From Trichoplax adhaerens (lineage: Eukaryota; Animalia; Placozoa): a stretch of 64,000 nucleotides of DNA. The notes beneath the pieces were generated by a model. It ran no database searches, had not been told where the DNA came from, and was given only the letters and a program-made list of their open reading frames with translations. The translations under genes were made by a program, and so were the position numbers. Below, piece by piece: positions 12,742 through 62,610 of this stretch. Each line of letters starts with the position of its first letter. Position 1 is the stretch's first letter. The DNA lies in contig NW_002060951.1 in NCBI RefSeq assembly GCF_000150275.1, forward strand, positions 1,188,297 to 1,252,296. Reading direction: 5' to 3'.

Positions 12742-15700
12742 ATGAAGGCGATCTCAGTAGCTATCTTATTGCTTGCACTATCTTACTCTGCTAATGCAGG
12801 TCACAATGCCAACGCATGGCGAAACAAAGTCATCTATCAGGTAAATCCTCTAAAATTTACAACAATATTAATGTCGTCACTTCAATTAGGGAATAATCCC
12901 AATCTGCCTTCACTCATCTTGAGTTTTTCTTTACTTTACATATTTACTAAATTGCTGTATACTGTAGAAATTTAGAATTGCAATTGCCATAGATAATAAT
13001 ATTGCGTTTATACTGTCCTGGACAACATAGGCATCTATACAATAACTTCATTATAATTGCGTCCTCACGCTTTCCTAGTAACACTGGAATGAATAATTTC
13101 TAGCATTAAATTCATTTCAGATGTTAAAATTTTTAAAACCTTTGAGTTATTTGGCCATTTATTGGCCATTCATATTTCTTGCTCGGTTTATTACCGGTAC
13201 TATTTTTATTTGTAGTACATTATTTTATTCTTTTCAATAAAACCGAAATCTTCTGTCCCTGATTGATGGTCGAATTCCAGCAGATATGAATTCAGTAGTC
13301 TACCGATTCCTTTAATTTGAATTTGTAATACAATAAATTATCTACTCTATAATATATATCAATTTGATATCACCTATATTGGATTGCAAATAGAATAAAT
13401 TGGCCATGTAATAAGTTACCGTCGTCTAAAGTCGTATGTTCCTATACTTCTGACAATTAAATCATTTATATAAGCTACTTTGATACATTTTTATGATTTT
13501 TATCCAATGTACAGGTTTTAGTCGACCGTTTTGCCGGCTACAATTCTAATTCATGGAGCTCTTGTAAAGATTTAAAGGGTTACTGTGGTGGCAGCTTCAA
13601 AGGTTTAAAGCAGAAATTAGGATATATCAAAAATATGGGATTTGATGCCGTTTGGATTTCACCTGTTGTAGAAAACACCGATTTAGGTTACCATGGTTAT
13701 TGGGCTAAAGATATTTATAAGATTAATTCTCACTATGGTACATCTCAAGAACTAAAAGACTTGGTAAATGAGGCTCACAAGCAGGGAGTTTGGATTATGT
13801 TGGATGTGTAAGAAAAATATATTTATTCCAACTCTAGAATCAAGATAGCAATTGATAATACAAATAATTCAATCATTGTTTTGAATATATTAAAATTATA
13901 AACCGATAATTAAAGCTATTACTATAATTTGCCTTTATTTACTTTTTTAATCATGATATCAATACTCCTGTAGTGTTGCCAATCATATGGGCTATGGAGA
14001 CATTAGCACCTTCTACCCATTCGATCGTAATGAACATTATCACCCTGCCTGTGAAATTAACAACTGGGGTAACCAATGGGAGGTAATAATTTTTAGCATA
14101 TTGAATCCCTTTAGCCATATCCTCCATTCATGGAATCCTTTATACCTGATTTGTAAGCAGAGGTATATATCACCTTAACTAATTAACTGATTGAAATAGG
14201 TTGAAAACTGCCGTCTTGCTGGTTTACCTGATCTTAAACAAGAAAATAACTTTGTCAAAAATGAATTGAAATACTGGGTCAGCTGGATCGTCAAGGAATA
14301 TAACTTTGATGGTATTCGCATTGATACTATCCCAGAGGTTCGTTTAAAGACACATCCATTTTTATAGAATGTAATTAACAAATCTGAGTTAAAAAATTTA
14401 TCATCATATCAACCGATAGCAACTCTAAGCCTGTTTCAATATAGTACTTAGTACTCTTCCTACAGCCATAATTTATAAATCTTAGATGGTCATGCAATTA
14501 AATTATATCGATATTGAAGTAGACAAACCCAAATAGCTTAAAAATTTTTACTTCGTAATTTAAAACACAGTCTCATGTGTAGAATTACTAACCTGTAGAT
14601 TCCAGTTTGGTTCTGGTCTGAATTCCATACTTCTGCTAACGTTTTCACAATTGGAGAAGCTTTTAATGGTTTCGTAGACTATTTGAAGAAATATGTACCT
14701 CCTTTGGATTCAGTTTTGAACTACCCCATGTACTACGCTTTCAAAGACGTATACATGTACAAACAATCCATGACTAGAATCCGTGATGTCTTAAACGAAG
14801 AAGTAAGTTACTATATACGTGACTTTAACATAACAGATGTTTTAAATCGTATAAGTTGTAAATAGATATTTCGGTAAACTACAAATTCTATCATTTAACT
14901 CAATAAACTGAATAAGATTTAAGATATGGAGAGCATAGTACAGCACTTAATTGTGTAATCGGCGTATATATTTATGTAATGCTTAAAAGAGCATAATTTG
15001 ATTAAGCTAGGATAATATAAAACATAAATCATTATGACGAACGAAGTTAGAAGTATTTTTATTCATAGTTTCTCAAGCGGACAAATTAGCATTTCCAGCA
15101 AGAAAGCTTGGTGCAAGCATAACCACTCTTGACTTCAACTGATTGGGAGTATTTTTTTACTTTTCATTAAATTATAGTATAGCAAATTCTCCGATGTTCA
15201 ATTACTCGGTCTCTTCTTGGACAACCATGATGTTCCGCGTTTCTTGTACTTCAATAACGATTGGACTTTGTTGAAGAACAACTTGGCTTGGATCTTGCTT
15301 GGTGAGGTAAGACCAATAATCGACAATTTACATAGAACAGCTACAATACTTGCTCTCCAGTAAGCATGAAAAATATCTTGAACCAATTTCTATAAGACGA
15401 TTAGCGTTTTCCTCGTGTAAGGGTTTGCATATCTATTTCAGGGTATCCCAATTGTATACTATGGTACCGAACAAGCTTATGCTGGTGGTAATGATCCAAA
15501 TAATCGTGAATCTTTGTTTCCAAATTTCAACCAGAATCACTGGATGTATGATGTAAGTCATCTTCGTCAGATTCTATTCGTTCGGTGTAAATAGTTTATG
15601 TCAATCATACATCTTATAAAAATATTTTTAAGAATTACTAAAATGTCTTCTAATCACATAGATATAGTTATCAGACGTTACTTATAGTATATGCTTGAAC

Positions 15701-22147: not shown

Positions 22148-22454
22148 TATATAAAGGGTTGTTAAAGTTATCAACATTAAAGTATCGTCACCTTAAATTT
22201 GATAGCATTTGTTCATCGCTAGAAAACCGACCATCAGGTATGAAATATGCACTTGAAGACATTTTTTAAACTAGTTCTTAAGGAAATATCTTAGCTTTAG
22301 TTTCATCCCAGTATTAATTAAAAGGAAGATTATAATCTACAGATATCTTCGATCGGTTAAACACTAAGTAAAAATAAGAAGTAGTTTGCAACTTGTAAGT
22401 AAATATCAATTAGACTAATTAGAATATTTTTCCATTTCCGTTGCATAAGTCTAG
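22148..22454 (+). promoter_or_regulatory. TATA box, non-coding first exon and 5'UTR intron of the 22456 gene
   Basis: TATATAAAG at 22148-22156; donor CAG|GTATGA at 22237/22238; pyrimidine tract and acceptor TAG ending at 22454, one base before the ATG. Confidence 0.55.
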
Positions 22455-22455
22455 T

Positions 22456-22800
22456 ATGTCCAGCTTTATTTGTATGCTTGCCATCTTGGTTGCTACTTTG
22501 ACCATTTGTCACGCTATCGAAGATCGCAACGATCATAAATTCTGTATAGCATTAATGGAGAAACTTGAACACGACAAAGATATCCAGCGAAAATGTGAGG
22601 CCATAAAGCTGTTAGATATCTTAGTCAAAGACAAGGATAGTTTAGGAGTTCTTATTCGCAAAACTGAAGCGAATAATAAGAGAGAAAAGACAAATCTTAA
22701 TAGAAATAAGACAATCTTCGACAAATTACAAAAGATTGGGCAGAGACTATACCACCAAGTTAAAGAACGAGACGACGAGCCAGAGCTTATTTTTGGCTAA
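22456..22800 (+). CDS. Orphan secreted peptide precursor (114 aa) ending in Gly-stop, a candidate amidated peptide
   Basis: Real start is the ATG at 22456 (the track ORF starts at an upstream TTG). Signal peptide MSSFICMLAILVATLTICHA, two Cys in the pro-region, RK/RK/KR sites, C-terminus ERDDEPELIFG*. Confidence 0.75.
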   Translation: MSSFICMLAILVATLTICHAIEDRNDHKFCIALMEKLEHDKDIQRKCEAIKLLDILVKDKDSLGVLIRKTEANNKREKTNLNRNKTIFDKLQKIGQRLYHQVKERDDEPELIFG

Positions 22801-25800
22801 TTATTTCTAATTGTAACTTTGTTACAATCCAAATTCCATATCAAAACGAAAATGACATAATGATGTGTGTCAGAAAATAGAAAATGTGTAGAATAATCAA
22901 TGGATAATATAATCTATGTGAAAGGATTGAAAGTATTTAGAATTATTAATTTTCTTCTCTTGGCATACTCTGTAAGTGCTCATATGAATTTTTAGTATTA
23001 GCTGAAATTATAATATAGATTATCTATTAGTATACATTAATATGCTTAGTCTAAGTCAGGAAGCGATATTTTAGTACCGAAACTATCTAAATTGATTAGT
23101 TTCATATAGACCTCTATATATTAAAATATGCGATATGGATTCTAATAAATGCATCATTAATAACGACTGATAAAGCTGGCTCAATATGATTTATTATGTC
23201 TACGTATGGTTTTCTTCACATACTGAAAGTTTAACCGATAGATTTACTCAATGGTAGTGGATCAACTAAATCTTCTAGAAGAATATAATCAATTACAAAT
23301 TAGCATTTGACGTATTAAGTAACTATTAAAGAAACACAGCATTCGACATCAAGCATGATAATTGTTTACAACATGTGAAGATCATAAAATGCTGTTATCA
23401 TCTAGTTTTATGGGCAAAAGTGGGAAAATGATCAAATGGAACAGGAAGAATCTTATTAACTCCTTTATTTTTTCACATCAATTCTATCGCATAAAACATC
23501 AATACAATAGCTAGTAGTATTTTGAAACTATTATAATTTCCTCACTTTCCGGACTATAAATATTTTTTGGAAAAAATGCGATGTAGAACTATTCATTAAA
23601 AGAATGCTTAAATAGTGGCCATGATTGAAGCTAGTCAATCGTCATTTATAAAGCTCCTCTCAACCACCATCAATCTGAAAATTGTATGATTACGTAAATG
23701 CTATATTCAATTTACCAACGCATATTGGTACGTATTATTATTACGTCGAGATAAAAGATATACAGTACAACACTCTAGCAAACACTATCCGGTAAAATGA
23801 TTATCAAATAAATTACTGCACATATACTAATAGTTTTTTCAAGTAAATGATCTTAAAACAGCTTCAAATCCATATTCAGGGTAGTAGAATAAGTTTATAT
23901 TTTAGAAAGGGTTTACTGTCACAATTTCAATTTTGTGACAAGGAAACGTACAGTAAAAGTCATAAGAATTACTGACTTAAACACCCTTTTACTAAACGTT
24001 AAACACACACTTCGAAGTACTGTAAAGATAGAACTTTTACTAGTACAGTTTAGACACATCTACAACTTTTCACCATACTACTCAACTCAAACGTTCCCGT
24101 TTATATAGAAACCGCCTAATCTGTCAACAACAACAGTAATATTATTATACCCTACTTGGAGAGGCATCTCGAACTGAGATGTTCCTTACTTAGCTTTTCT
24201 ATCAGTAAATACTTTAATCTCTTACTCACATTCAATCTTAATCTAAGCATGTATGTTGTCTAATTCAACTATTAATAGCTAGAATTTGAATCATCTTACT
24301 ACTATTTACACATAATAACAATCAACATCAAATATGTAATAAACTATCACAAATATTATCCACGTTAAGGCCTCATTTATCTTTCCTAGCACTACAAACA
24401 TGGATATTCTCTATTTTAGCTACTACTGTATTTATTAAACTATAATAACAGTAAGGTAATACCGTAACGGAAGGGTTAGTAAACTTATCAGTAAAGATAT
24501 TTACAAATAATTGTAGTATTATCGCTTTGAAACAGTATAAAATAATTAGAAATCATGATAAAGTGAAGCAGTTTAAGCCTACTTTACAACAGATATTGAT
24601 TTAAAATTAGATTTTTCTTAATTCTTCTTCCCGCACATCATATATATGATTATAGTTGTTACTTCAGCTATATCATACAAATGCTATCCTCAATTGATGT
24701 GGCGCAATAGTTAGCAAAATACAGAAGGTGTGTAGTGTAGTCAATATTCGATAAGTTAGTGCGTCAAATATTTAATACCAATTATCGTAATTAAAAATGT
24801 GAATGCTGCTAGCTCACCTTGTACTTGGCATGTAGCATCATTATTTATAGCAAAACATGCATGTACATACACACAGACAAGATTATTATATATCTTAGGA
24901 TGGGATTACAGTACATGAAGAAAAACCAATCAGAGAGGCAAAGGTGACGAAGCACAAACACTATTACCATGCACCTTATTTTTAACAATTCAATTTTTGC
25001 TGCCTTAAAAAAGGTACGAGCTAAAGATGTGCCGTACATCACGACAATATTATCGTAAATTTGCAATAAATCCATTCTAAGGTTAAATATTTATATATGG
25101 GCTAGATTGGATATCAAATCACTTTAATTCTAGTTTTAGCACGTCTCTTTGAATAATTAAAGATTTTTTATAAAAAATAGCCTCCTTCACCTTTCATTCT
25201 TGTTAAGCCTACCCAATGTATGATGTTGAATAAAGCTTGACTAAGTTACAGTTTAGAATTATGTATTAATACAGATAAAGTCTACGTATGAGTTGATTAT
25301 AAGATGATAGTAAGTCATTCCTAATGAATGATTTATTGATTAACCTTCTAACTATACTTAATTTGCTGGTACAATTAAGCCAATGATATACTCATGGCCC
25401 ATAGTAAGCTATATTTTCGTATATCACAATAACACAATCATTAGTTTTTGTACTCTTACTTAAATCATTTATTAGAATTTTATGATTACTTAGGCATACA
25501 TTTATTTAATTCTATTTTAAAAGTTATATTAGACTCTATTTTTATCTATACCAAATATTTAAGACTAATGGAAAGAATGATCTTGGGTTAGTAAACTAAA
25601 ACTGCTTCATATATGCTTAAAAGGATTACTCTGCATACCTAAATCGGAGTTTAGAATCAATCTTAGTTAGCTTTGTCTTGAATATGAATTTCTTCTCATA
25701 ATATAATAGGCAGACAGACAAGAAAATAATGATCCTTTTAATAGATATATTCTCCTTAATTTTTTGTCCATTATAAAATTTTATATACAGTACAATTAAT

Positions 25801-27094
25801 TCAGCTGTGTCAATATTTTTGCATGTATGAGGTGTTTCTGATTTACTAGCGGTAAAAGATTAATATACTTCAATAATGATTAGTTTAGTTTAATTTAATG
25901 ATCAAAGTTATTGCCGTGACCTTGTAATCTTATAGAAGGAATTAATCCAGACTTTTAACTTGCATGGCTATGAATACAAAAAGAAATCTAATTTTTCCAG
26001 TGCTATATCTACCATGTGTACTTTACTGCTTGATTTTAAAAGTAACTGAACTAGTCTAGCTGCTTAAATTTAAAAAATTTAACTTCCTTTGATACCAAAT
26101 TATTCAGTAACAATCATGAAGTGAATTAGTTTAAATATTTCTAGCTCAGCTGCAATTTACAAAGCGAAACCAATGCAAATTTTAAATTTTAATACAGTGA
26201 TATCTCAAAATCGATACTTTTTTTAAGTACTGTATTCTGCTAAGGGAGCTGACGGAATTTGAATCAACTGCCGTACCTTGCTGAAAATAATGTATTCTAA
26301 GCCAGTTTCAGGCCAATTACTAAATTTAAGATTTTGTAGATCCAACCTACATTGTAATCTGACATCTTAACCGAGTATGGAATGGGTCTTCCTTTAATAA
26401 TTTTTAATAATATCGCCAGCGCATATATCAAATGAATTGCAACATATCCTTTATGTATTTCCTATCCTATGCGAATATGATTTGCGCCATAGAATTAGCT
26501 GATAATTAAATCACTCATTTTATAATATACTTATTAGTATTCGTTTTTGTCATAATTCTAGAATATAAACGATATTGCTATCGTTAATTTAGATTTAGAG
26601 TAGTATAACTTTATTTTCTACTTTAAAATATGTTAGAGCACGCACATAGAGCGAGATAGTCATGATCCAGAACACGATCTGACCTTATGAGCCCCCTTAT
26701 GAATTAGATATCTAAGTAATTCACTAGCTGTTGCTGGAAAATAATTAGTTTCATAATCGAAAACCCTAACGAGAAGCTATCAATTGTATAACGATCGATA
26801 CAACGTATTTGTGTAGAACAGTAATCTTTAACACCGTGACAATAAATAATTCAATATTTGTGCAAGTCAGTACGTGAAATATTGTACGAAAATTATATTG
26901 TGATGATCAGTGACTATAGCTTGCGTAACATGAATTTCAATAAAGTATCACATTGAAGTTACAGTGATTATCGCTGTAAAATTATAATTGAATAAGAAAA
27001 GTCGATACCAATATGCAAATAATAATTATAAAATTATCTTCAAAGCATATTAATCCATAGAGCAAAATCAACACATTAGAATCTACTGGAATGG

Positions 27095-27580
27095 ATACTA
27101 TAGTAAAATAAATGTGATTAGATACGAGATTACAGACTACTATAAAATTGATTATTGACAGGATTTTGAAATTAAATCCTTGCAATCATGAAAGAAAGAT
27201 TTTGGTAGAGATTTTATCGAGCTATTTTCACGTAATCATTATGAAAATCGGTTTATTTATCAAGCAGAAGTATTATACAACAGCGTTATGAAAAGTTGAC
27301 GATATTCATGATCTATGATAAAGTAATATTTAATACCGTTAAATCTAATAGATAGTAAAATAGATATGATTGGATACGAGACTGCAGATTGCAATAAAAT
27401 TGATTATCGGCATGATTTCTATACAGGATTTTAAAGTTATATCCTTGCCTCTATGAAGCAATATCGGTATTATTGTAGAAATAATGTCCAGTTATTTTTG
27501 CATAATCATTCCGAATATCAGCTCGGTTACTAAGTCAAAGCATGAAGCGACAGCATTATAAAAAGTTGATGTTTCACGAT
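27095..27580. repeat. Old diverged tandem duplication, period about 250 bp
   Basis: GATACGAGA...TAAAATTGATTAT...ACAGGATTTT...ATCCTTGC...TAATCATT...ACAGC...AAAAGTTGA occurs in the same order at about 27120-27300 and 27373-27570. Confidence 0.6.
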
Positions 27581-28248
27581 AGTTTCCTTATTAGTATTTG
27601 ATTTGAAAGCAGAGCTCTTAACAAAAAATGTGAAATTGAACTACATATTGTTAACAGTATATCACCACCGCTAAAATTTAAGACGTAAACATATGAATCT
27701 ATTTCTTACTACGAATAATATTTAACATTATTAAAGCTTTCAATAAGTTTATAGTGACACTAATACAATTTTATCCACTACTTCCGAACCATTTGTATGT
27801 CTATAGGATTATCAGATCATAAGCTGTTTTACTTATTGAAAAAGTGTAAAAATCAACGGAATAGAAGTTCTTGGAAGTCTTTAAATTATTAAAAGGGATT
27901 CGATTAAAAAATATAAATAATTGACCTATTTTTACTTCGTAAACATCTTTTATTTTAAAATGGAAACTTACCGTATCTTTTCTTGAATAACATTATAAAT
28001 CTTTAAACATTAGTGGCAAAGTACGTCAATAATACAGCACTTATTTTTAGTCATTCGATAAGTGTTCTTCGTTTTTTTAAATCGAATTACCAGTACTGAA
28101 TAAGTACCGTTATTTCAGGTAACTGGAATTAGCCTTCACTTCTTCGACAACTTTTACATCAGAGGAAATGAAATTTGAGATTTCCTGAGTAAAATTGGAT
28201 AAGTTTACCTAGGGACAGTAAAATCCTGTCTTAGTTGATCACGGAGTT

Positions 28249-28930
28249 CATTTTCGATCAGAAATCCGAAAATTTGAACTCCGTAGAGGCCATAATAGAT
28301 AAGTAATTCACGATCCAAAGGAAGTTATTCGAAACCTAGATGATAGTACAGATCAATTAAGATCAGAAATTCGAAAAGATGAAGGTAGTAGGAATCACTT
28401 AAGGGCGAAAGCTCGAAACGACGGCCTTAGCAGAGGTCGCTCTCCATCAGAAATTCAAAAAGAAGGACTTAGTAGGTCATTTTCGATCAGAAATTCGAGA
28501 AGTTGGAAATTGTAAAGGTCGCTTTCGATCAGAAATTCGAAAAGATGGAAATAGTAGGGTCCATTTTCGATCGGAATCCGAAAATGTTAATCGTAGAAGC
28601 TGCGATAGATCAACAATTCGTTACGCAGAAGAAACTGTTCGAAACCTAAATAACCTTATTAGTCGCTTTAAATTACAACTCCGAAAAGATGGACTTAAGA
28701 GAGCCCACAGTAGATCAGCAATTCATAGTACAGAAGAAGTTAATCAAGGTAGAGGTTGTAACATATTTGTTGAGACATGGCGTTAGCAGAGCTCGAGATA
28801 GATCAGATATGCAAGATGTTAGAAATGAGGGTTGTAGTAGAGCAGCACTTGTCGTAATAAATGTGGCTAATCAAGAAATAGCCGAAGATATTCGGCTATT
28901 TGTTGAGAGACGAGAAGCTCAGTAGAGGTA
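28249..28930 (+). pseudogene. Decayed coding-like tandem repeat (42-bp / 14-aa unit, about HFRSEIRKDGxSRG), probable dead repeat-precursor gene
   Basis: Core TTTCGATCAGAAATTCGA-like motif at 28252, 28357, 28399, 28441, 28481, 28523, 28565. Spacing is 42 bp from 28357 on, with one 40-bp step that shifts the frame. There is an in-frame TAA near 28300, and no intact start or signal peptide was found. Confidence 0.55.
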
Positions 28931-31900
28931 GAAGTAAAGTTAGTTCGAAAATTTAAATATTGAGTAAACATCGTTTTAAGTTATAACCTTAATAAGGCAG
29001 TCTTAAAAAAATGGTGATAGATTTACCGTACTTCATGGTCGAAAAGAAGTCAATAGGAGAAATTACTGAATATATTTAAATTCGGAAAAGCATTGTAGTG
29101 TAATAATCTTTTAAGATATTCAAGATGAGATTCCACAGAGAAAGTAATTGTGTAATCATGAAGCAATCGTTCTGGCAGTAATTCTATCTCGGTTATCTTA
29201 CGATAGGTTATAATAAATACAAAACTGATGCGATATCAAAATTATCATCTTGAGAGCGGAAATCCTTACTTCACTAAATTGTAACTGGGGTAAGCCACTG
29301 ATATAATTACTATATATTATATATCGTAGGGTTAAGTTCTAATTGGAGCATACGAACTCGTATAGATGTTGTAGATTTTCTGTTGGAATAATTTTATTCT
29401 CGTACCGTGATTTGCTTTACCATCTACTAAATTTCCCTTAATAGAGAGGTAAATTTTGGACTCTATTTCTTCTAGCTGTCACTTTGAGATGTGTAGCTAT
29501 TCGGAAATGATAAAAGTATTAAAATGGTAGCAGATTGTCTACGCTACAATAGTACAGTTCCATCATGTAATCGTTTTTTATCAAGATGATCTTGTGTTTA
29601 CAAGTCTTTAATCATCTTTTTTTATTGCTAGTCTAATTCTAAATCGGTACATTCTATCGCGATTGGGCTCATTGGCTTAGTTAGATTTTGTACTCTTGGG
29701 TTTAATGAATAAACATCACATATCCAATTTCAGTTTCATTCAACTATCTATTTGTTATGTTATGGATATCATGACCTTAATCTATCCAAATAGTCAATAA
29801 AAGAATTAATTTCCTTTGTTTGATATTTCAATTTAATCAATTGAATAAGTAGAGCTAAAGTTAAAGACATAATGCGTAATTACTTTTTAAGTAGATACTA
29901 GAAACTGGAGTGACGGATACAAATTTTACATAGTTACTTCAGTAGTAAGTAACTAGGATCTAACAGAGTTGAGCAAAATTTACAATTCTAGCCTTAGAAA
30001 TTGAGACCAATACTGCAACGTATTAGTCCATCGCCACATCATGCTGGAATTAAAAATAAAGACCACTAATTTATATATCGGATTGAAACAACAAGAATAA
30101 ATTGATATTACTAATAAACTTCAGAGGTATGTACGTGTACCGTATGTTTCAATTCCACTTTTCTACTTGATATCTGAGAATAGTTTAAATAAAAAAACGA
30201 TAAATGATCGTTCTGGTCTTTAATTTCACAAATTTTATAATGCTGCCAGCCGGTCATTTATTACCGTCGTTTATTCCTTTTTACATTTTAGAGATTACTT
30301 TAGTAACAATTCATTCACCTAAGATAGACAAGAGGTTTTATCTATCTTGCCTAAAGCATCAGTAAATAATGCGATCAAAATAATTTATTGCAGAGTATCT
30401 TTCGACAATAATTGTTCTACATCGTACTGATAAATTATCTTTCGTCAAGTTGTCATTAGTCATAAACCATTTATGTTTTGTTGCAAGAAAAACTATAATT
30501 CAGGTAGTAGAATCGATATATTCCGTTATATTTAGTCAAATACAGGGGCATAGTCAGTATTATTTATCCGATATCATAGTTGAAGTAATTCGATTAAAGA
30601 GTGAAGGTAGTTAATATTTATTTTTCTCGAGTTTATTTTTTAGATTAATCAATATGGATAGTTAAGTAAATTAATAAATTGTTGCAAGTCGTGATACTAT
30701 GATCCGGGAATTTAAAAGTAAAACTGTTACTGCAGAATCAATTGTAAAAGCTTAAGTCAATGTGAATATACCGTACAGATTCCTGCCTAATAATAAATTA
30801 TAATTAAACTTCATTGAAATTAGCTGTCTTTAGTACCTCATTAATCTACAATACAACTTACCAGCATAGCAAAAGCTATAAACTTATTCTAGAGTTTCAA
30901 AGGATGAAAATGACGGAGATATTAGAATGAGAGATAGATCCGTAGATCACAAAGAAAATAGAGAGCGTAATCATAAAAGTATTAATACAGTACTAAAAGT
31001 GATCATGATAATCTCCGTGGACATAATAAATCTAATCTCTATCGTTATTCCAGAAATTATGAAAGTTGGAGTAAATGGCAACCATTCCTAGATATCCAAA
31101 ATTCTTAAAGGCTGCGACAGATCCGATCTAGGAGTGTACTTGCTATTACATTTGAACTGAAATACCATTGTACTACAGATGGCACTGCCAGTCTAGGGTA
31201 ACAAAGTTAATTATGGCAATTTTTAAACCGGTAATTTCACACATTATTGATGATGTTTAGCGCTACACAAGTAAATATGATACTTAAAATATAAACTTAT
31301 TGTGCCATTATTACAAAATAAACGAAATTATGCACTATGCAAAAGAAACTATGAACGATTATGTCTCCGTAATAATTCGAAATAGAAGAATACAGTATAT
31401 AATGGGAATATTTAAATAACAGCACCTGTCTATTATGTAGCACATACCGTACTATACTCTCATACAGGTAAATCATGAAATACAAATCAATTATTTATTA
31501 TAATCGTAAATATTGATTACCATCGCTCTATGTTGTGAAAAATTCCCTTCATCTAATTATATATTATCATTATAAGTTATTTGATCAAAGGGTGTTCGTA
31601 TCATTATATTGCTAAAGTCTCTTCGTGTAATAAACAAAAAAATGGGTATCCTCATACGTTTATTGCTTATATTATTAATGTGGTTTATTGCTGTTGCTAA
31701 ACATTTTAATCTTGTTGATAGGCTCGTATATACATATCAATTTTACTACGAAATACGTTTAATAATAGGTGTTATATGATTAGTTAGAAACACTATATAT
31801 TTACCTACAGTATATGATAATTGTATGGTAGTACTTGTAATACTGTAGGTGATAACGTTGTAAAAGGCGGACTGATAATTTACTAATTATAGTGCGAAGT

Positions 31901-33825
31901 ATAAATTGTAATCGTATTGAGGCACAACCTCATATAGCTATAAATACCGATCGTTAATAATAAATTGCAGTTACAAATCTTATTTACGGAGTGAACTCAT
32001 TGCTATAATATAACAATAGGGGTGATATTTGCAGAATATAAGCAATATACAATCCAATAAGTGACCCACTGTGTAATATAATGAGCTTTCGCAATAGTTG
32101 AAGATATTCTAATTTAACAGACCACACGACAGTAATCCATACCACTCAATATTTGCAGCCATAATCAGGCATTATGATCTCGTAAAGCTGAACTATAGTG
32201 TTTTTATATTTTAACATTATATATACGTTTAATGTATTAAGCATCATACTACCGCAATGTAATATGCACATAATTATTTAAAACTGCTTTATATATAACG
32301 ATCTTGTGCAAGATAATCCTCACATGAAGTTATCTGTAATAATACACTCGCGTAAATTAGCACGGATAAAACTCATGGAGGACTCCTTAAGTGTAAAATG
32401 AGGTAAAGTTGGCACCAAATTGAGATAGTATTATATAATAGCAAGGTTTAAAATATCGAATAAGACAATATTAATGTAGCGCAGTGGTATAGTAAATCTA
32501 CCCAAAGTATTAAAAATGAGATTTCGCTTGATTTTTCTATGTATTAGGAATACAAGTTATTTACAGGAAATGAAAGTCTTTAGAGAAGTTAATTCACTAT
32601 TTATACATTGATTTCTGTACTGCAAAACAATATAATAAAGCATTAAATCATTTATTTGAATGCAGATTATATCTGATATTAAAATTTAAAAAATTTTGAT
32701 GAGTTCTAAATGACGGTGAATTTACGTATAAACCGTCAATGGAGCAACTTTCATGTTGTCATTGTCATTTGCTATATTAGCATACTGTAATTTGAGTAAT
32801 GAAACGGATCACAACGGTGCAATCTTGTACGAAATTATTTAAAATCTTTGTAATAGCACGGCCAATAAATTATTAGACCGTAAATGCTATTGCAATCTTT
32901 CATTTTTAAATCAGGCAACGACCAATCTTTATTATAACATCACTGCAATTTTCGTGTAAAAAGTTTTTCATGTACTGACCTTGAGCTATAATTTCTTATT
33001 TCTAAAAGTAAAGCCATCTCGCTAAAGTAATCAGTACAACAATTATTTAAGGTATCGGGATCGATTGTAATAAATATTCCATCTTTTTTTCAGGAGGTTA
33101 TATCGTTCGTTTACAATGATCAGCTAACGTGATAAATAATCAACACGAGCAGGAAATTAACAGATATAAATAGTTCCTAACAATTCTAAATAGATACTTT
33201 AATTTCATGGTATTTAGTTAAATACCGCTAACTATCGATAAAGTTATTTACTACGTCATAGTGTTCTAGCAACGATGAAGCAAGCTTGATTGATTCTACA
33301 CCATAGCACGATAGAATGTGATAGATGAACATAACAAATTAAATTTTATCTAAATTTAGCTACTATACAGGTTAAGATTGAGATGAGATTTATATCAATA
33401 ATCATACGAGTAAGTACACATTGTCTTAACCGGATCAATATGCAAGCTTCAATAGATATTTATTATTTCTTATTCGTATTTAATCCTTTTAATGCAGAAT
33501 TCGTAAAAAGTTAACGGAGACTATCAGATTAAGTACAGGCTTGGATAAGCATTTGAGTCTATAACATATTAATAATTGATCAATCAATACAGTATTTATA
33601 GATGTACCTAAGGTATATATTCTGTTGGATCTAACTATATGCAGATAATTCCTCTGGCATTAACATCTATTGCGATTGTAATAAGTATAGATATAAGGTA
33701 TATTATCTCGTAAGTAGGCTTACACTAAATTTACTATTTATTTCAGTTTAATTGATAATATGCAATTTTAACGTGCTGTTGATAAACATCATTTTGGTAA
33801 TTTTTTATATTTTTGATATTGCAGG

Positions 33826-34233
33826 ATGTCTAATTTTACTTGCTTGGTGGTTATTTTAGCTGCAATGTTGGCTATTTGCTATGGTCGGCCAAGTTTTCTG
33901 GATAACGATCAAGATTTTAATTTACTAAAAAAAATTAGTCAAGAAAGAACTATTCTGTCACTTCGTAATCGTCAACGGAAGATATTGCTGGCATTTAATG
34001 CTTTAAAAAGCTTATATCCGAAGAAAGCTATGCATCTTTTTAGTAAATATAGAAAACATAGAGCTCTTAGCCGATCTGAACGTCGCCATAATACAGAAAT
34101 TAGTAGGTTGAATGATCGTCAAAACGATTATGGACAACATGACGGTCGTGCAGAGGAACTTCGTTATGAAGATCTCAGAAGATTAAGTGATCTTAAAAGA
34201 CGCTGGGTTAAATTCTATCGTCGAAATCACTAA
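33826..34233 (+). CDS. Orphan secreted, highly basic peptide precursor (135 aa)
   Basis: Acceptor TTGCAG|G directly before the ATG. Signal peptide MSNFTCLVVILAAMLAICYG, many KK/RK/RR/KRR sites, C-terminus KRRWVKFYRRNH*. Candidate TATAAATA at 33165. Confidence 0.75.
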   Translation: MSNFTCLVVILAAMLAICYGRPSFLDNDQDFNLLKKISQERTILSLRNRQRKILLAFNALKSLYPKKAMHLFSKYRKHRALSRSERRHNTEISRLNDRQNDYGQHDGRAEELRYEDLRRLSDLKRRWVKFYRRNH

Positions 34234-37200
34234 AAAATAGGAGGATAATTTATGATAGATCGGTTTAATACAGATTGAATTTTACAAATTGGGCAAGAAT
34301 GTCATACTTAGCACTATGGGCATTAGTGGTAGTAATAGGTCGTTAACTCGTGCTAGGTAATATTGCCCATCTGTAGTATTTCCCCCTTTGATCTGCAGGA
34401 TGTAGCTATCTTTGAATTAGTTTTGAAATAGATTTTAAATCTATTTTCAGTAGTTTCTGTAAATTAAGGTTGTAACCGAGTAAATCTAGATTCTAAGAGA
34501 AGTTGTTCTTCATATCAATTCTAGACTGTGATTTAGCCGATTTGGTGATTCTTTTTGTTGGTATTTAGTAGCATTACACAACGTTCTGTTTTCTAGCCAT
34601 TACTCTCAATGTAATGAGTAATATGATGTAATTCTTAGCATCATTAATGATACTATGAAGGAAGACACTAATTCTATCGTCTTTATGTATTAAATATATA
34701 TCGTGATCTTATTCTATGTGTGCATCGTAAAAGGAAACTAGCAGAAAAATTTTACATAGTATGTGTCTGTTCTTAATCTCTGACGTAAAAAGGATACCAA
34801 ATGTATTAATCATTCTCTAACTAAGTTCTGTAATAAAATAAAATAGATCGATACTTAATGGTAGATTGTTACTAATAATGTATCTACTGGTCAATCTTAA
34901 ATAAATTAAGACATTACGACCTTTTTTAGTATCCAGCCTTTCTTAATGCTATTTCTACTTGATCGATGAGTAGAGTTATTTCTGATATGAAAATCCACCC
35001 AACACTGGCAATAGTCGGATAAGTCATGAGAAAGATTAGAAAATTGTGCTAAATGGACAAGATCAATAGAGTTGGAAAGCAATCTATAGGACGCTTGGAA
35101 CTATAACTATTAGAACGCAAAGTACTATTAAGATACTATTTGGTTTAAGTTATTTAGTTGCTGTTTATTACTGCAACTTCAATTATATAATTGTTTTTCA
35201 ATAATGTCCAATACCGTACACCTATCGCTACAATAGAAGATGATTTTATACCTGTATATTGATTTTATTCATGAGTTCAATATACACTTTAACTTAATGA
35301 TGCATAACGATTAAACTTGAAAAAAGAGTCCTCTCACTATTTAGATGCTAAAATGCTCTCTACCATTCTTGATATATTGATACGCTACCTGTAGTTCTAT
35401 TCTTTAGTATTTCATTATTAAGTAATACGATTTATCGTTCACGTTTATTGAATTAGGAAATTGTGGAAATAATTCACTTATATGCGTAATAATTGCTGGC
35501 GAAGAGACTCAATAACGTTAAATACTATAATACTATTACAGTATTTCAAATGAGGAGTTCCTAATATAAGTGGCTATTACCATTTAACGAGCTAGTCGCC
35601 TAAGAAATAAACTAAACTACAAAGATTATGAACTATTCTTGATAATATATATGCAATTGGCTCCATATTTGTGCTATAATTCGATACCGTAATGAAGAAT
35701 TTGCGATCTTACGGACAGCATAGAATCAATTTTATTCACCTCATTTACTTACAGTATATCAAAAATGATGTTTCTAATCTGCTAGCTCTATTATTTTAGG
35801 GCAATTGTTCACTTAAATCTCATTAAAATTTACACCTGCCTATCTTAATATTGAATAAGCTTTATTGTGACTACAAAAATTTAATTAGTATTGGATTTAA
35901 TTTGCTAAAGTAGAGATAGCTAAAGTTTTTCGTGAAGGAAATATAATAAAATTCAATATTTACTTGAGTTAACTCCAGTAACATTAATATGACTGTATCA
36001 ATATACTAGACCCTACTTTAATATAATTCTTAGTTTGAGAAATTATATTCTTTCACACCATGGTGAAAATTTATACAGAATGACGTCGGATACAGGAAAT
36101 ATTTTATTTTTGAGCTAGGAAAGCTAATAAACTATCCCTACATATTTTGGTGGTAGTACGATCTAAAGTACTTGCATGATGAATAATATTTCATTTAAAA
36201 ACGAAAATTTGGTCTAGGAAATCTAAGAATGTTGCGGTATATTGTAGTGTCTCGCTATTTTTCCGCTTTAATATTGCAAAATTATTATTTTATTTATATA
36301 TTGTTTTCATTTGTTACCTTAAAATGTTTTTTGGTATTGATTATAAAGCTTATATTTTGCTCCTTAATAATTTAGCGGTTGCGGTCTAGGGTATTGCCTT
36401 GGCTGATTGCTATTATTAAATTTAATTAAATGAAATTTAAGCATACAATAGTGTCGCGGTTATTATTTTACACTATTGTTGCCAAATTATCGTTCTATTG
36501 ATGCAATATTTCTTGTGATTTCTTCGTTATAAAAAGAGATTTTGGCTTTGGGCTATCAAGGGCGTAAAAGCTACTTTGAGCTCTTTTGATGGCGGTATAG
36601 TTTTCGATGTTGCCATGTAGGATAGATATTATTATTTATTAGGTAAGGAGAATATTTTAATGAAAATTAAAGCATGTCATAGCATAACTGTCTTCATTTT
36701 AAGCCTTAACATTATTGTAAAATTATCATCAACTTCTACGCTATACTTTTAGTTGCGTAGTCTTAAAAGCTATTACAATAAACTTGTCGCGATATTGTTT
36801 TAGTTAGGAAAAGAGTATACGTTTATCAGTACGTAATTTTATTGTAGCTTAGTTGATGGTAATGTTTAATATTTCTTTGGAAGGGTAAAGATAAACAAAG
36901 TAAGAGACGGCTCTAATTTTTAAAGCCTAGCTAAATAATTATATAACAATTTAATAATACTTTTGTATAGAGGTAAAATTGAACAATGCTAAAATTACAC
37001 ATGGTATATAAGGCATCAAGAAGCTCTCTCAGGCTATTGAGAAATTAATGATCTTTAACAAATAATGGTTCAATTTTGAGGTGATCACATAATAAATCTT
37101 TCACTCGATCGATATCTATAAGAGAATATCGAGAATAAATCATTAAAACAATTTGTTATTTATTGTTAAATTATTACCAAATCAATCATTTATGAAAAAT

Positions 37201-37816
37201 CTGTATTAATGAATATTAATATGTCCACGAATACTTCTCATATGTATTATCTTCTCCATTCTATACTGGTTAAGAATTACAAAAGGTAACGATATGAGTC
37301 TTGGAAAATATTCTCATTAATGACATTATAGAACTAGAATGGATACTTTTATTGCTATCCCAAATTTTGATCAAGGGATTGATCATGAGGAAAGCCAATG
37401 AATTTTTTACACATAAAATGCCTCAAAATAATTTACTCGATAGTAGATTTAGTAATGAATTTAATTTTTCAATGGTATTTATAACTGCTTCTAGACTTAC
37501 CGATTGTTAAATGACAAATAAATCATGCAAAATAAATTAACTCTGATGTACAGAATAAGATGCTTTCAATCATTCTACATGTTGATGATTTATGTTCAGA
37601 AATTTCTTTGGCAACTTTGTTCAATATTTTTTGACCTTATTCTTACCTGCCCTAATACTTGCTTAATAGAATGAGCTACTAGTATTGCTGTACTGTATGT
37701 ATTAAAGTTCAAGCAATCTGATCCTATTGATGCTATTTAATTGCTGATTGATGATTGTTTGCAATTTTTTTCTCACGTTCCTTTAATACTCAGATGGCAA
37801 ATTCCCATTTAAAGTT

Positions 37817-38030
37817 TATAAATACCAGAACAAACTATCTTGAAGTTGACATTCTTCTTAGAAATTATTCCCCTCTATCGGATATAATCTCATACCAGTT
37901 AATATAGGAGGTAACTTTTAGAAATGGTGATAAAATTTCTGAATTCCTTAATTGATATTATTTAATTAACATACTGTACAAAATTATGAAAAGATAGTTA
38001 ATAGTAATTCTCGTTTCATATTCATGTTAG
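37817..38030 (+). promoter_or_regulatory. TATA box, non-coding first exon and 120-bp 5'UTR intron of the 38032 gene
   Basis: TATAAATA at 37817-37824; donor GAG|GTAACT at 37910/37911; acceptor TTAG ending at 38030, then G-ATG. Confidence 0.6.
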
Positions 38031-38031
38031 G

Positions 38032-38943
38032 ATGACAAATACCGGACAAATTTCACTTCTATCGATCATATTATTATGTGTCGCTTGCAAAGTAGGATCC
38101 AATATGCTTGATACAGTTGAGCAGGATATAGACGACATGACGGAGAATATAATATCACAGCTTCGTCTTCTTTCCAAGCTTCAAGAAGGCATTGCTGTTA
38201 ATAGGAATAGCAATAGACAAAGAGCCGTAAAATCTGATCAAATATCTACAGACCAGGATATCAATATGATAGATGAATTACTCGATCTTCAATATTACAT
38301 GAACAAACGTAAATCGGACCAAAAGGAGCTACCTATGTCAAGATTGCACATACTACAAGAGCTTATAAGTAAACTTGAGCTTGGTGCGCGGGTTCGTCAT
38401 GATTCTAAACGAAGATCATCCGTCCCATGCGAGTATGTTCAAAATAATAAAGGGCGCGAAGGAGTTCGGAGAGCTAATTCCAAACGAAAACCAATCGTTC
38501 CACGCAAATTTGTTCAGCACGATAAAGAATACGAAATATTTCGTAGTTTTAAACAGAAGTCACCCATTCCAGTTAAATCTAAATTGCTTGATGACCCTAA
38601 AGAACCCAAAGGAGTTAATAAAGAAGGTGGACCATCGAAGCCACTTCCGATTTCTAAAAAACTGATTCAAAATAAATTTACTGCTGATAGTGAAGAATAT
38701 AAAAGAGTTCGTAAAGAAGGTGGAAGTAAGCAAACTCCCCTGACTTTAAATAAATTAATTGAAGACCAGGAAGAACCCGAAAGAATTCGTAAAGAAAGTA
38801 GATCTGCGAAACTACTACCTGTATCAAATAAATTAATGGAGGACCCCGAAGAACCCAAAAGAATTCGTAAAGATAGTAGAACTACTCTACGAATTTCGAG
38901 TAAATTGATTGAAGATGATGGGAGTGTATGGAAGAGCAAGTAG
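38032..38943 (+). CDS. Orphan secreted protein/precursor (303 aa) with C-terminal basic tandem repeats of about 27-33 aa
   Basis: Signal peptide MTNTGQISLLSIILLCVACKVGS, acidic pro-region, KRK/KRR/RR/KR sites. Repeats such as EPKGVNKEGGPSKPLPISKKL, EPERIRKESRSAKLLPVSNKL and EPKRIRKDSRTTLRISSKL. Confidence 0.75.
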   Translation: MTNTGQISLLSIILLCVACKVGSNMLDTVEQDIDDMTENIISQLRLLSKLQEGIAVNRNSNRQRAVKSDQISTDQDINMIDELLDLQYYMNKRKSDQKELPMSRLHILQELISKLELGARVRHDSKRRSSVPCEYVQNNKGREGVRRANSKRKPIVPRKFVQHDKEYEIFRSFKQKSPIPVKSKLLDDPKEPKGVNKEGGPSKPLPISKKLIQNKFTADSEEYKRVRKEGGSKQTPLTLNKLIEDQEEPERIRKESRSAKLLPVSNKLMEDPEEPKRIRKDSRTTLRISSKLIEDDGSVWKSK

Positions 38944-39335
38944 ATCTACCGGGGGTAAGAAAGAGCCTCCGACCTCGAATAGATTGGCTTTAGATAGTAA
39001 ATATGGGAGAGCTCGTAGAGAAACTGGAGGTAAGTAAACGCTCCCGGTTTCAAATAAATTAACGGAGGACTCTAAAGAACCCTAAAGAGTTCGTAAACAA
39101 AGTAGATCTGCGAAACTACTACACCCTATTTTAAATAAATTGGGTCAAGATAACAAGGTGTATGGAAGAGCACTTCGATCTGCTGGGAGTAAGCAAATGC
39201 CACGATCGCCCAGAAATCAATATACTCTTGATAATAAGGAATATAAAAGATTTCGTAGAGAATATGATAGTTAGCTACCACCGCCGGTTTCTTATTAATT
39301 AAAGACCCCAAAGAGCGCAAAAAAGTTGGTAAATG
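38924..39335 (+). pseudogene. Fossil continuation of the 38032 repeat array in the +1 frame
   Basis: After the GGG run at 38920-38922 the +1 frame reads VYGRASRSTGGKKEPPTSNRLALDSKYGRARRETGGK*TLPVSNKLTEDSKEP*RVRKQSRSAKLLHPILNKLGQDNKVYGRALRSAGSKQ...DNKEYKRFRREYDS*, with stops at 39035, 39083 and 39272. Confidence 0.75.
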
Positions 39336-41535
39336 TAGTGAATAATGTTATTAAAAGCGATAGATGTAATTCATGCGTACTAGTTGTGGTAGAACTCATT
39401 GCGATACTGTGTATTCGTTATATTTACTTGTATTTATGTATAATTAAAACGTAGTGCTACTGTCCTCTTTAGATATAGCATTGCAGCCTAACATGACATT
39501 ATATAGATTAACATGTGCTTGCATATAGCGTCTATATTTAAGGCATGTACTTAACATATGGCCATGATTTGCATAACACTTTCAGCTTAACTAGTTTAAT
39601 AAAGTTGTGCCCGTACATAAAAGCAAACAAAGTGGATCTAGGAAATCTTTATTATAGTATCTTAAGCTCGCTACAGTATTTGCTGGAATACTTTCCATTC
39701 TCTTACTCGTATGTACAGCGGATATTAGAAATCAGTTATCCCTCTAGTTCTATTCTGAATATACTCTTCTTCCCTGATAATTTGTGTGATCATTTGTTTG
39801 CTACACCATCGATGGCCACTTAACTACCACCTCCATGCACGGAGGTACCTACTGAAGTAGATAGCGATACGTCAGGGCTAGTAACCCTGACGGCGACTAC
39901 ATCACAACGATAGCTTTCCGAATAAATTGATTCAAAGCGTTAAAGAATATGAAAAAAAGTTCAAAGAAGTGATGAAAGCCAAGGCGAAGCCTTTTATTAA
40001 TTACAGTATCATTTTATTCGTAAATTGATAATATAGGCTATTCCATTGCAGCAGCGTGACGATTTATCTTTTGCTTGTTGGCTTCACTTTCTTAATTATT
40101 ACCGCATGTGGATGCAAAAATATTTATTAGTATTGGTGCTGTAGTTCTAGTAGTTGTAGAAGATCAATTACAGGCGTTTTATTACATGCCGATATCTCTT
40201 CCTTGAGATCGATTACCAGAGTTACCTCAATTAAATTAAAGTATTTATTAACGATTAATTCATTGAAAGATAATAGCAATAAGGTTATAAAGATTCCATG
40301 CTTATTATAATGCCACGAGAATTTTAAATTTGCGCTGTGCTTGAGCATTAACCTGTACTCTACTATAAATCAGATTGAATACAAATTTATAGTAATAAAT
40401 CCACCCGTCTTGTATCCATCGTCCATCCATTGGAGTTATTTTAATTTTGTTGATCAAGCATTGGGATAATATTTCTCAATTTCATCAATATCTATTGAAT
40501 CTACCGTCATTAAACTACAGTATCTGATCGTTATGACGACAATGAATCTGAAGAATTCGCTTGCCACATGAAACTCACTGTCTACCAAGACTACTGCAGT
40601 ATCATTCGAATAACTGTGTGATCTACTGAGAGTTATTACGTGCCAGAATATGACTTTAATATGTAACATATATAGTTATGAGTTAAGCCATAACAGGTTT
40701 CCGTTATCAACTACATCGCATCATGACGTCGAGGTGGTACCGTGTTATAGTCCATTGCAAATTCGGATGAATGGATTCAATGGTGAAATTCTCTGCTCAG
40801 CGTTCATTACTATGCGATGACTTGCAACAGAATATGATTAGTTTCATTTTTAAATAAGTAAATGAGATATTTTACTTCAATTGTACTATCCAACGGGGGG
40901 GGGGTGATTGAAATATTAAGCCAAAAAAATAAGAAGGATAATCAAGAAGAAAGTGTTGCAATTTTTCTATCTAGAATCCATTTCGCTCTTCTCTATGCAG
41001 TGAAGCGTTTAAAGTAAGAAGTGAATGGCCATAGGTAACATATTTTCAGGAAGGAAGCATAAAGATCAAGATTGTACTGATTGCGGTATCTAACTCTCTA
41101 TACCAAAAGGTTACACAGTACAAAATGTCGAGCTGATGCAGAGTTAAGCGACTATTTATTCTGAAGAGAAATTGTTTTCTGTTCAGAATCAATTTTTAGG
41201 ATTTGCTATCTACAGTATTATGATATCTATAGTACAGTTCTGGACGGACAGACACCTGGCCTACTTTGGTCAATCAATTGTGTTCAACACTTATTATGAC
41301 AGTACTTTAGTATGCAGACAGTCGATTGTGAATGGACTAATTTTTTCTCGATTTTAAGTAATATTCCATTGCATTCCATTGCCTGTTACTCAATTCTGCT
41401 TAGAAGCAGTCAATTTAGATCATGAATGTTATCCAAATGAATACGAGTGATTTTCGAAAATAGATACGCTAAGTCACTATTTTTCCCCATTTTCTGCCTT
41501 ATCTGGTATGGAAAGTCCGTCCACCCGAGGGGAGT

Positions 41536-42326
41536 TACAGTACTGTACTGTACACCACAGTATTTACAGTACAGTACCTTACATCTACAGTACAGTACAG
41601 AACAGTACAGTACCTTACATCTACAGTACAGTACAGTACAGTACAAATTGTAGGGTGACATTATTTTTGCAACAGACTCTATAGTATAAAGTATTTTTTG
41701 CATTTGTATTAACGTCCAGTACAGTACAGTATTTACACTACCTTACATCTACAGTACAGTACAAACTGCACGGTGACATTATTTTTACAACAGACTCTAC
41801 AGTATAAAGTATTTTTTTGCATTTGTATTGACGTGCAATAAGTACAGTACAGTACAGTACAAATTGCAGGGTGACATTATTTTTGCAATAAACTCGACAG
41901 TATAAAGTATTTTTTGCATTTGTATTGATGTGCAGTACAGTACTGTACATCTAGAGTACAGTACAAATTCTAGGGTGACATTATTTTTGCAATAAACTCG
42001 ACAGTATAAAGTATTTTTTGCATTTGTATTGATGTGCAGTACAGTACTGTACATCTAGAGTACAGTACAAATTGTAGGGTGACATTATTTTTGCAATAAA
42101 CTCTACAGTATAAAGTATTTTTTGCATTTGTATTAACGTGCAGTACAGTACCGTACTGGAGTCTGAGACTCAGTACGGTACAGTACAGTATTTACAGTAC
42201 CTTACATCGACAGTACAGTACAAACTGAAGGGTGACATTATTTTTGCAATAGACTCTACAGTATAAAGTAGTTTTTGCATTTGTATTAACGTCGAGTACA
42301 GTACTGGACGTGACAGTGTACAGTAC
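41536..42326. repeat. Complex minisatellite: six 98-153-bp units interleaved with (CAGTA)n
   Basis: Core GGTGACATTATTTTT...CTCTACAGTATAAAGTATTTTTTGCATTTGTATT at 41654, 41772, 41870, 41974, 42078 and 42231, separated by CAGTA runs. Confidence 0.95.
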
Positions 42327-61729: not shown

Positions 61730-62610
61730 CTTGTACTGTACAGTACAGTTACTACAGTACAAGCTTATAGAATTTCCTACAGTACAGTACTGTACAGTAG
61801 AGTAGAGTACTGTACACTGTACTGTACAGTACAGTACTCTAATTTTTGATTGGCGGTCATTGCAGACTTGTACAGTACTATACTTACCGTACTAGAGCAC
61901 GGTACGATACGGTACAGTACAGTACAGGACATCATCACAAGTTTTCCATTGGTGATACGGTACGGTGGCCCAGAAGGCTGAGGATGGAACGACACGTTTG
62001 CTGTACAGTACATTTTGAGTGGTACAGTACAAATGTACAGTACACTGAGTACAGTACAGTACTGTAAGCTAGCCCGAATTTTTGACACCCGATCTGGTAC
62101 TGTACCAGTACCAGATCGGGTTTCGAAATGAGATTTACAGTACTGGACTGAACTGTACACTGTAGAACCATCACAACTTCAATACTGTACAGTGTACAGT
62201 ACTTGACAGTACAGTATGCAGTGGTTGTGGTGATTGATGTACTGTACAGTACAGTACATTGTACAGTACTGTACTGTACTGTACGCTAGCCCGAATTTTG
62301 GACACCCGACCTGGTAACTGTACCAGTTACCAGATCGGGTTTAGAAATGAGATTTACAGTACTGGACTGTACTGTACACTGTAGAACCTTCAGGACCTCA
62401 ATACTGGACAGTGTACAGTACAGTACACTGTGGTTCTGGTGATGGATGGATGTACGGTACAGTATTGTACTGTAGACCGGACCGGCGTTCATTACAGTCA
62501 TGCCATGGAAATTCCAGTACAATGTACTGTACAGGACTACCATTGTACTGTACTGTACAGTACTGTACTGTACTGTCAAAAGGCCGTCCACAGTACAATA
62601 CACTGTAGCT
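61730..62610. repeat. Large ACAGT/TACTG satellite-like array containing a duplicated 217-bp unit with a GC-rich hairpin
   Basis: Dense CAGTA runs in both orientations. The unit CTAGCCCGAATTTT-GACACCCGA-CTGGTA...CCAGATCGGGTTT-GAAATGAGATTTACAGTACTGGACTG occurs at 62069 and 62286. Confidence 0.92.

Follow-up and report, generated by a model that had tools for sequence, protein, structure and literature searches.

A syntenic trio of candidate secretory-cargo genes in Trichoplax adhaerens

Three co-oriented genes with a common 5′ layout

The stretch of DNA analysed here, 64,000 nucleotides (nt) of the placozoan Trichoplax adhaerens (contig NW_002060951.1, positions 1,188,297 to 1,252,296; hereafter the window), carries three small genes on its + strand, labeled G1, G2 and G3. 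The window is part of a 3.2-Mb scaffold, with a GC content of 28–39% along its length, and genome searches covered the whole 105.6-Mb assembly (1414 contigs). I refer to the present genome as H1, and to that of Trichoplax sp. H2 as H2. An earlier note on this DNA had described three genes with a single coding exon each, and all three open reading frames (ORFs) can be read accordingly, starting at positions 22456, 33826 and 38032, and encoding 114, 135 and 303 amino acids (aa), respectively. It had also recognised no domain in any of them; Pfam gave only sub-threshold noise, and a sequence search of the PDB gave no match.

The three genes have a similar arrangement upstream of their start codons. 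In G1, a TATA-like box is read directly at 22148–22156 (TATATAAAG; this and the following coordinates of G1–G3 are on the + strand), 90 nt upstream of a candidate splice donor. The putative non-coding first exon spans 22178–22237, with its start taken as TATA+30 and its end at the donor (CAG/GTATGA), and is followed by a putative intron in the 5′ untranslated region (5′UTR) at 22238–22454 (217 nt, GTATGA...TCTAG, with a pyrimidine tract), and by the coding exon at 22456–22800. In G2, the TATA-like box at 33614–33622 (TATATATTC) is found 96 nt 5′ of the donor, with a putative first exon at 33644–33709, a putative 5′UTR intron at 33710–33824 (115 nt, GTAAGT...TTGCAG) and the coding exon at 33826–34233. 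The corresponding elements of G3 are a TATA-like box at 37817–37825 (TATAAATAC), 94 nt upstream of the donor, a putative first exon at 37847–37910, a putative 5′UTR intron at 37911–38030 (120 nt, GTAACT...TGTTAG), and the coding exon at 38032–38943. The predicted leader exons are thus 60–66 nt long and free of ATGs, and the predicted introns hold two, one and three ATGs in G1, G2 and G3, respectively.

In each gene, an AG is found at −3/−2 of the ATG (TAG/T-ATG in G1, CAG/G-ATG in G2, TAG/G-ATG in G3). Such an acceptor-like AG, preceded by a tract with at least 13 pyrimidines in 20 nt, occurs at 21 of the 2399 ATGs of the window (0.88%), and those of G1–G3 are among these. Both the acceptor-like AG, 1 nt before each ATG, and the upstream TATA box and donor of each gene had been reported in the earlier note, and are confirmed here; for G2, the box at 33614 is a better candidate than the TATA adjoining the donor. 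The common layout is coherent and its origin by chance unlikely, with the leader introns standing as a prediction.

Signal peptides and the kinship of G1 and G2

The predicted N-termini of all three proteins are strongly hydrophobic and contain Cys, with best 11-residue Kyte-Doolittle means of 2.9 (G1), 3.3 (G2) and 3.1 (G3). Small residues are found at −3 and −1 of a plausible cleavage site in each of them, and no later hydrophobic segment is present. These features agree with the Cys-containing signal peptide that had been proposed for each gene, G3 being judged by this heuristic only.

The signal peptides of G1 (22456–22515, MSSFICMLAILVATLTICHA) and G2 (33826–33885, MSNFTCLVVILAAMLAICYG) align with a score of 57, compared to 20 ± 4 for shuffled sequences (z ∼9), and none of 3000 shuffles reached 57. 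The first 30 aligned residues include 11 identities, and the DNA is 66% identical over 56 nt, in register, beginning 3 nt ahead of the ATG and extending through the first 53 coding nt. A tblastn search within the window joins residues 1–43 of G1 and G2, with an E-value of ∼6e-4. Past the signal peptide, the alignment score is below the shuffle mean. By these comparisons G1 and G2 are paralogues, with a kinship that is demonstrable through the signal peptide only.

When G3 is aligned to either G1 or G2 and compared to shuffled controls, its signal peptide gives a z of ∼0, and the mature parts give P values of 0.08–0.2. G3 is counted with G1 and G2 because of its position, orientation and gene layout only. 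The single family of three that had been proposed thus holds for the G1–G2 pair, but not for G3, which is at shuffle level against both. When the H1 genome was searched with G1, G2 and the G3 orthologue from H2, no additional paralogues came up.

A profile of the G1 and G2 N-termini matched one more ORF, on another scaffold (G000:C1414:1633726-1634073, or L013:27-374), with E=1.7. This ORF starts with MSHKICLHLSILAALAIICQA, continues with RLIQRNDDFD and ends at a GTAAGT donor; ∼680 nt downstream (L013:1033-1152), CATAG is followed by a candidate exon, whose open frame codes for a knottin-like six-Cys peptide (C-C-CC-C-C) and ends at a stop codon. An exact look-up of the ORF in the public protein collection gave no match. 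I did not retain it as a third relative of G1 and G2, as its signal-peptide z of 4 is not significant given that it was selected genome-wide.

Orthologues and annotation

A search of 5.8 billion clustered proteins yielded a single relative for each gene, namely TrispH2_003670 for G1, TrispH2_003671 for G2 and TrispH2_003672 for G3. These have consecutive numbers, and all lie on one 566-kb H2 contig; synteny and gene order are therefore conserved between H1 and H2, which answers for Trichoplax the synteny comparison that the earlier note had suggested. The proteins differ at three of 114 residues in G1 (97% identity), one of 135 in G2, and seven of 273 aligned residues in G3 (97% identity).

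The public protein collection does not contain the exact H1 protein of G1, and no H1 model of 63–200 aa matched it, so that G1 appears to be unannotated in H1. The public models of G3 start at Met36 in H1 (MTENII) and at Met25 in H2 (MLDTV), both lacking a hydrophobic N-terminus; G3 is probably mis-started in both annotations.

A scan of JGI metagenomes with G1 found no match. With a profile built from G3 (H1 and H2), only its own cluster was retrieved among 1.84 billion representatives, and none outside Trichoplax. In a full-text search with peptide strings and the H2 locus tags, no match was found in main texts. The genes had been regarded as orphan and undescribed. This no longer applies, as G1–G3 are annotated in H2, two of them are in a published candidate list, and the orthogroup of G1 is present in four placozoan species.

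Published expression of the G1 and G2 orthologues

The candidate list is that of Najle et al. (2023; PMC10580291, Table S5A). TrispH2_003670, the G1 orthologue, belongs to OG_3934 and is listed as SignalP 5-positive with no transmembrane (TM) segment (wSP_nTM). OG_3934 spans T. adhaerens, Trichoplax sp. H2, Hoilungia hongkongensis and HoiH23. The maximum fold change of TrispH2_003670 is 21.8, in the cell type peptidergic_mu_like, and the Hoilungia member of the orthogroup, Hhon_g02346.t1, likewise peaks in mu_like. TrispH2_003671, the G2 orthologue, belongs to OG_3935, which is restricted to the two Trichoplax; it is also SignalP 5-positive, and its maximum fold change of 53.6 is in peptidergic_mu. 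According to the same source, peptidergic cells share a prohormone convertase, carboxypeptidases (CPE), PAM and glutaminyl cyclase.

I related these cell types to anatomy by combining the metacell numbers of Table S2 (PMC10580291) with the data of Mayorova et al. (2025). The mu and mu_like metacells are 183 and 184–187 in H1, 214 and 215 in H2, and 248–249 and 250–252 in H13. By this cross-mapping of two papers, which is my own, ‘mu_like’ corresponds to ventral gland cells positive for LF and for the astacin Ta26557, and ‘mu’ corresponds to rim-zone cells positive for TaELP and for the astacins Ta54934/54935. Because of the mu_like and mu peaks and of this mapping to gland cells, G1 and G2 can be described as adjacent genes, each expressed in one of two sister types of secretory cell, a description based on the H2 orthologues and the two-paper mapping. 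For these two genes, the proposal that the locus encodes secreted proteins of peptidergic cells is well matched by the SignalP-positive orthologues and their expression peaks.

Mature proteins of G1 and G2

The mature part of G1 is ∼94 aa long, contains two Cys and ends in ...KERDDEPELIFG. AlphaFold predicts an all-helical structure with four helices, at a low-confidence pLDDT of 59 that is too weak for a fold search. In the ESM Atlas, the nearest neighbours of G1 are small hormone-precursor clusters, with values (0.77–0.82) that are within the range of shuffled proteins. On the basis of this model, G1 could function whole, as a small protein. Its C-terminal ...KERDDEPELIFG might conceivably yield an amidated peptide, but K-E-R is not known as a canonical convertase context. 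The mature part of G2 is 115 aa long, with a net charge of +16 and no Cys. Neither protein contains repeats.

Two further features had been put forward as common to all three proteins. One is a D-[QK]-D-[IF] motif in the pro-region. Degenerate 4-mers of this type common to G1–G3 number 22, compared to 22.7 ± 13 in shuffles, and the motif occupies positions that do not align; I therefore rejected it as a family motif. The other is the presence of multiple dibasic sites, which number 3, 9 and 14 in G1, G2 and G3, against 4.4, 7.6 and 12.6 expected by composition, so that the counts match what composition alone would give, and I rejected an enrichment. The precursor reading is weaker for G1 and G2 than for G3, because they show no repeats, no cleavage-site enrichment and no detected peptides.

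Repeat units and truncation of G3

G3 begins with a signal-peptide-like segment (38032–38100), with LLSIILLCVAC as its hydrophobic core, in a frame that is open for 24 codons 5′ of Met25. This is followed by a non-repeat region of ∼100 residues (to about residue 125), with a single difference between H1 and H2, and then, from ∼38407, by degenerate units of 24–26 aa, with R-x-R-K sites at 38704–38715, 38782–38793 and 38860–38871. The H2 orthologue is longer (424 aa), and its last 220 residues consist of nine units, of 13–27 residues, that end in R-x-[KR]-[KR] or R-A-[SL]-R. The pattern R.[KR][KR] occurs seven times in the H2 protein, every 24–26 residues, compared to 2.1 expected (P=0.005). Two types of unit alternate, ...SNKL[IM]ED.EEP.RIRK and ...[DSN].(V)YGR..R. 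The ESM Atlas gave no usable match for G3; its model for the H2 protein, with a mean pLDDT of 0.40, is consistent with disorder.

In H1, an extra base in a run of G at 38920–38923 (GGG A GTG, where H2 encodes ...DDG VYGRASRS...) shifts the frame by +1, and the ORF ends at 38943. The former C-terminal units continue out of frame at 38924–39274, equivalent to the tail of the H2 protein. In the shifted frame, this segment contains TAA stops at 39035–39037 and 39083–39085, ahead of the ancestral stop at 39272–39274; it keeps Y-G-R and K-R-F-R-R motifs, and has ∼2 units fewer than H2. An assembly error is unlikely to be behind the truncation, because there are three independent lesions, the frameshift and two stops. 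They suggest that the Y-G-R-type units ceased to be coding in the H1 lineage some time ago. The precursor architecture that had been proposed is supported in G3, whose product resembles a propeptide of several units with a tail in decay.

Decayed coding-like repeats had been reported both between and behind the genes. Repeat-like sequence is indeed present at 28.2–28.9 kb and behind G3, but no link of the former to the genes was detected. It is a degenerate 42-bp tandem repeat at 28200–28930 (+ strand), encoding SEIRKDGNSR-like sequence in shifting frames, within a locally GC-richer and G-skewed stretch, and is unique in the genome. I rejected it as a set of decayed G3-type units, since its similarity to these does not exceed that of shuffles and of other regions of the window.

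Other features of the window and ORFs on another scaffold

A 77-aa open frame at 12742–12972 (+ strand) has a clear signal-peptide-like start, MKAISVAILLLALSYSANA, and no Pfam match on its own; it probably represents exon 1 of a further secreted-protein gene. On the scaffold that carries the knottin-like peptide, ∼9 kb upstream of the ORF at 1633726, a 96-aa ORF (L012:600-887, G000:C1414) has a signal-peptide-like start, MKNQVVFLWAVVFLACCMISIQA, and an AG 2 nt before its ATG, with neither a Pfam match nor an exact match in the protein collection. An acceptor-like AG, 1–8 nt 5′ of the ATG, is present in all small secreted-protein ORFs inspected, that is G1–G3, the ORF at 12742, and the two on the other scaffold (L012/L013). 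Leader introns ending just 5′ of the ATG may be a common trait of small secreted-protein genes in Trichoplax.

Elsewhere in the window, an exon at 52741–53232 (+ strand) encodes an F-box followed by the start of a WD40 repeat (Pfam F-box-like, E=4.5e-9), and belongs to an ordinary neighbouring gene. Long low-complexity open frames of the VLYC/TVQYS type, on both strands at 41410–41703 and 61777–62805, look like simple-sequence DNA rather than genes.

Interpretation

I consider it fairly probable, with real room for doubt, that G1–G3 are a conserved syntenic trio of regulated-secretory cargo genes of Trichoplax peptidergic or gland cells. G1 and G2 would have kept a common signal-peptide module and acceptor-ATG junction, with mature parts that diverged beyond alignment, and their products would be made in mu-like and in mu cells, respectively. 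G3 would encode a presumably secreted protein, in which a signal peptide and a non-repeat pro-region precede tandem units of 24–26 residues, from which furin/PC-type cleavage at R-x-[KR]-[KR] may release acidic peptides of ∼22 residues. Proteolytic processing is the most likely mechanism for G3, because its convertase-type sites are periodic. In the H2 lineage, G3 also has units ending in Y-G-R, and H1 has lost these last units through the +1 frameshift, followed by two nonsense changes. For all three genes, I infer any signalling role or proteolytic processing rather than observe it.

A number of points weigh against this interpretation. The 5′UTR introns are predictions from sequence. G1 looks like a folded protein of ∼94 residues in its structural model, rather than a polypeptide precursor, and the dibasic sites of G1 and G2 are as frequent as their composition would give. 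The proposed signal peptide of G3 is left out by two independent annotations, which place the start codon 3′ of it. In the supplementary tables of Najle et al. (2023; PMC10580291), OG_3935 is also flagged as ‘wTM’, TrispH2_003670 and TrispH2_003671 are both flagged as ‘nosignature’ for a neuropeptide signature, and their source is given as ‘NA’, with no peptide detected by mass spectrometry in the H2 peptidomics. The peptidomics comparison that had been suggested for the locus thus speaks against processed products of G1 and G2 in these data, but the absence of peptides in one H2 data set is weak evidence. No expression datum for TrispH2_003672, the G3 orthologue, is found in the part of Table S5 covered.

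The same observations can be read in other ways. The three genes may encode secreted proteins that are not signalling precursors, such as granule-matrix or helper proteins, or effectors co-released with astacins, with G2 (+16) and G3 (+15) as cationic adjuncts in defence or digestion. The lack of processed peptides and of a neuropeptide signature, the dibasic counts, the predicted helical bundle of G1 with its two Cys and the strongly cationic mature parts would all fit such proteins, as would the co-expression of secreted astacins in mu and mu-like cells, and the gland-cell positions of these cells (Mayorova et al., 2025). On the other hand, expression is in peptidergic cells that carry the processing-enzyme module (PMC10580291), the arminin-like candidates for antimicrobial peptides (AMPs) are found instead in lower epithelial cells (Mayorova et al., 2025), and the periodic R-x-[KR]-[KR] of G3 are typical convertase sites; the hormone-precursor neighbours of G1 point the same way, though at values often reached by shuffles. 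I regard non-signalling cargo as a possibility to be taken seriously, if on balance a doubtful one.

A narrower objection concerns G3, which might start at Met25 or Met36 and be an intracellular, disordered repeat protein rich in Lys, Arg and Glu, or might in its H1 copy be a decaying pseudogene. RIRK and KRK motifs resemble nuclear localisation signals, which would suit an intracellular protein, as would the starts of the public models. The frameshift and two stops in the former tail, the absence of homologues outside Trichoplax among the representatives searched, and the missing expression record in the supplements covered (PMC10580291) could likewise be read in this direction. A non-secreted G3 would, however, leave aside that the 24 open codons 5′ of Met25 encode a canonical hydrophobic core, with small residues at −3/−1, that a single nt separates the ATG at 38032 from an acceptor-like AG, with TATA, donor and intron laid out as in G1 and G2, and that an ORF of 303 aa is far beyond chance in DNA of 30% GC, and is closely matched in H2; I find it improbable. 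That the ORFs are chance open frames, with a coincidental common layout, seems highly improbable. About one stop-to-stop frame of the length of G1 is expected in the AT-rich window (a composition estimate), AT-rich random ORFs are often hydrophobic, and six other signal-peptide-like ORFs are present in the window. Against this, the orthologues are intact and syntenic, the G1 orthogroup extends to four species, and two of the orthologues have cell-type-specific expression (PMC10580291); the published expression of these orthologues refutes a chance origin for G1 and G2.

Returning to the secretory-cargo interpretation, a more specific version of it can be formulated, which I put forward only tentatively, as it is unlikely to hold in all its parts. 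G3 would be a propeptide gene of the multi-copy kind that has escaped recognition, with its signal peptide cut off in both public annotations, and with convertase cleavage leading to acidic ...SNKL[IM]ED.EEP peptides of ∼22 residues, and in H2 also to Tyr-Gly-Arg-ended peptides (potentially Tyr-amide) that were lost in H1. G1 and G2, and perhaps the knottin-type precursor on the other scaffold, would form part of a superfamily of secreted proteins that is recognised by its signal peptide. If this is true, the loss in H1 makes H1 and H2 a natural knock-out pair for G3.

Placozoans coordinate their behaviour through secreted peptides, without neurons, and their peptide repertoire is still incomplete. 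G1 and G2 were already catalogued, as unnamed and undiscussed candidates, and the novelty is modest. What is new is the H1 counterpart (G1) of a placozoan-wide peptidergic-cell gene, missing from the public protein collection searched; the observation that two catalogued markers of sister cell types are adjacent paralogues sharing only a signal peptide; the probable mis-start of G3, which would have hidden it from screens based on signal peptides; and the truncating frameshift that separates G3 of H1 and H2. The current picture is unchanged by this, but known biology is refined, and corrected targets are available for peptidomics and in situ work.

Comparison with known systems

The candidate propeptides of Najle et al. 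(2023), OG_3934 and OG_3935, are the same genes as the G1 and G2 orthologues, unnamed and with no homology to neuropeptides; in the part of that source covered, neither a sequence analysis nor a gene-gene link, genomic context or peptide is given for TrispH2_003670 and TrispH2_003671. The combination of a conserved signal peptide with unalignable mature regions, as seen in G1 and G2, is also that of the conotoxin superfamilies and of the amphibian skin peptide precursors. Unlike these, the G1/G2 set has two secure members, and no evidence for a role as toxin or in defence.

The placozoan arminin-like AMP1-4 are, like G1 and G2, secreted proteins of small size that lack domains, contain cationic regions and have a lineage-restricted distribution. 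They differ by their expression, as lower epithelial cells have AMP1-3 among their top markers, and a rim gland type has AMP4 (Mayorova et al., 2025), compared to mu-like and mu for the G1 and G2 orthologues. I therefore rejected G1 and G2 as arminin-like AMP precursors, since they are not lower-epithelial, and no anionic-then-cationic bipartite layout is seen in their sequences.

For G3, the closest likeness is to the multi-copy prepropeptides of placozoans (SIFGamide, PWN, MFPF/WPPF-type, LF, TaELP), which similarly consist of a signal peptide and tandem units at basic motifs, and are restricted to placozoans. As in these, some units of the H2 protein have a Gly before the basic site. In contrast to the short, K/R-flanked peptides of these prepropeptides, the G3 units are long (24–26 aa), acidic and bounded by a terminal R-x-[KR]-[KR], and the H1 allele is truncated.

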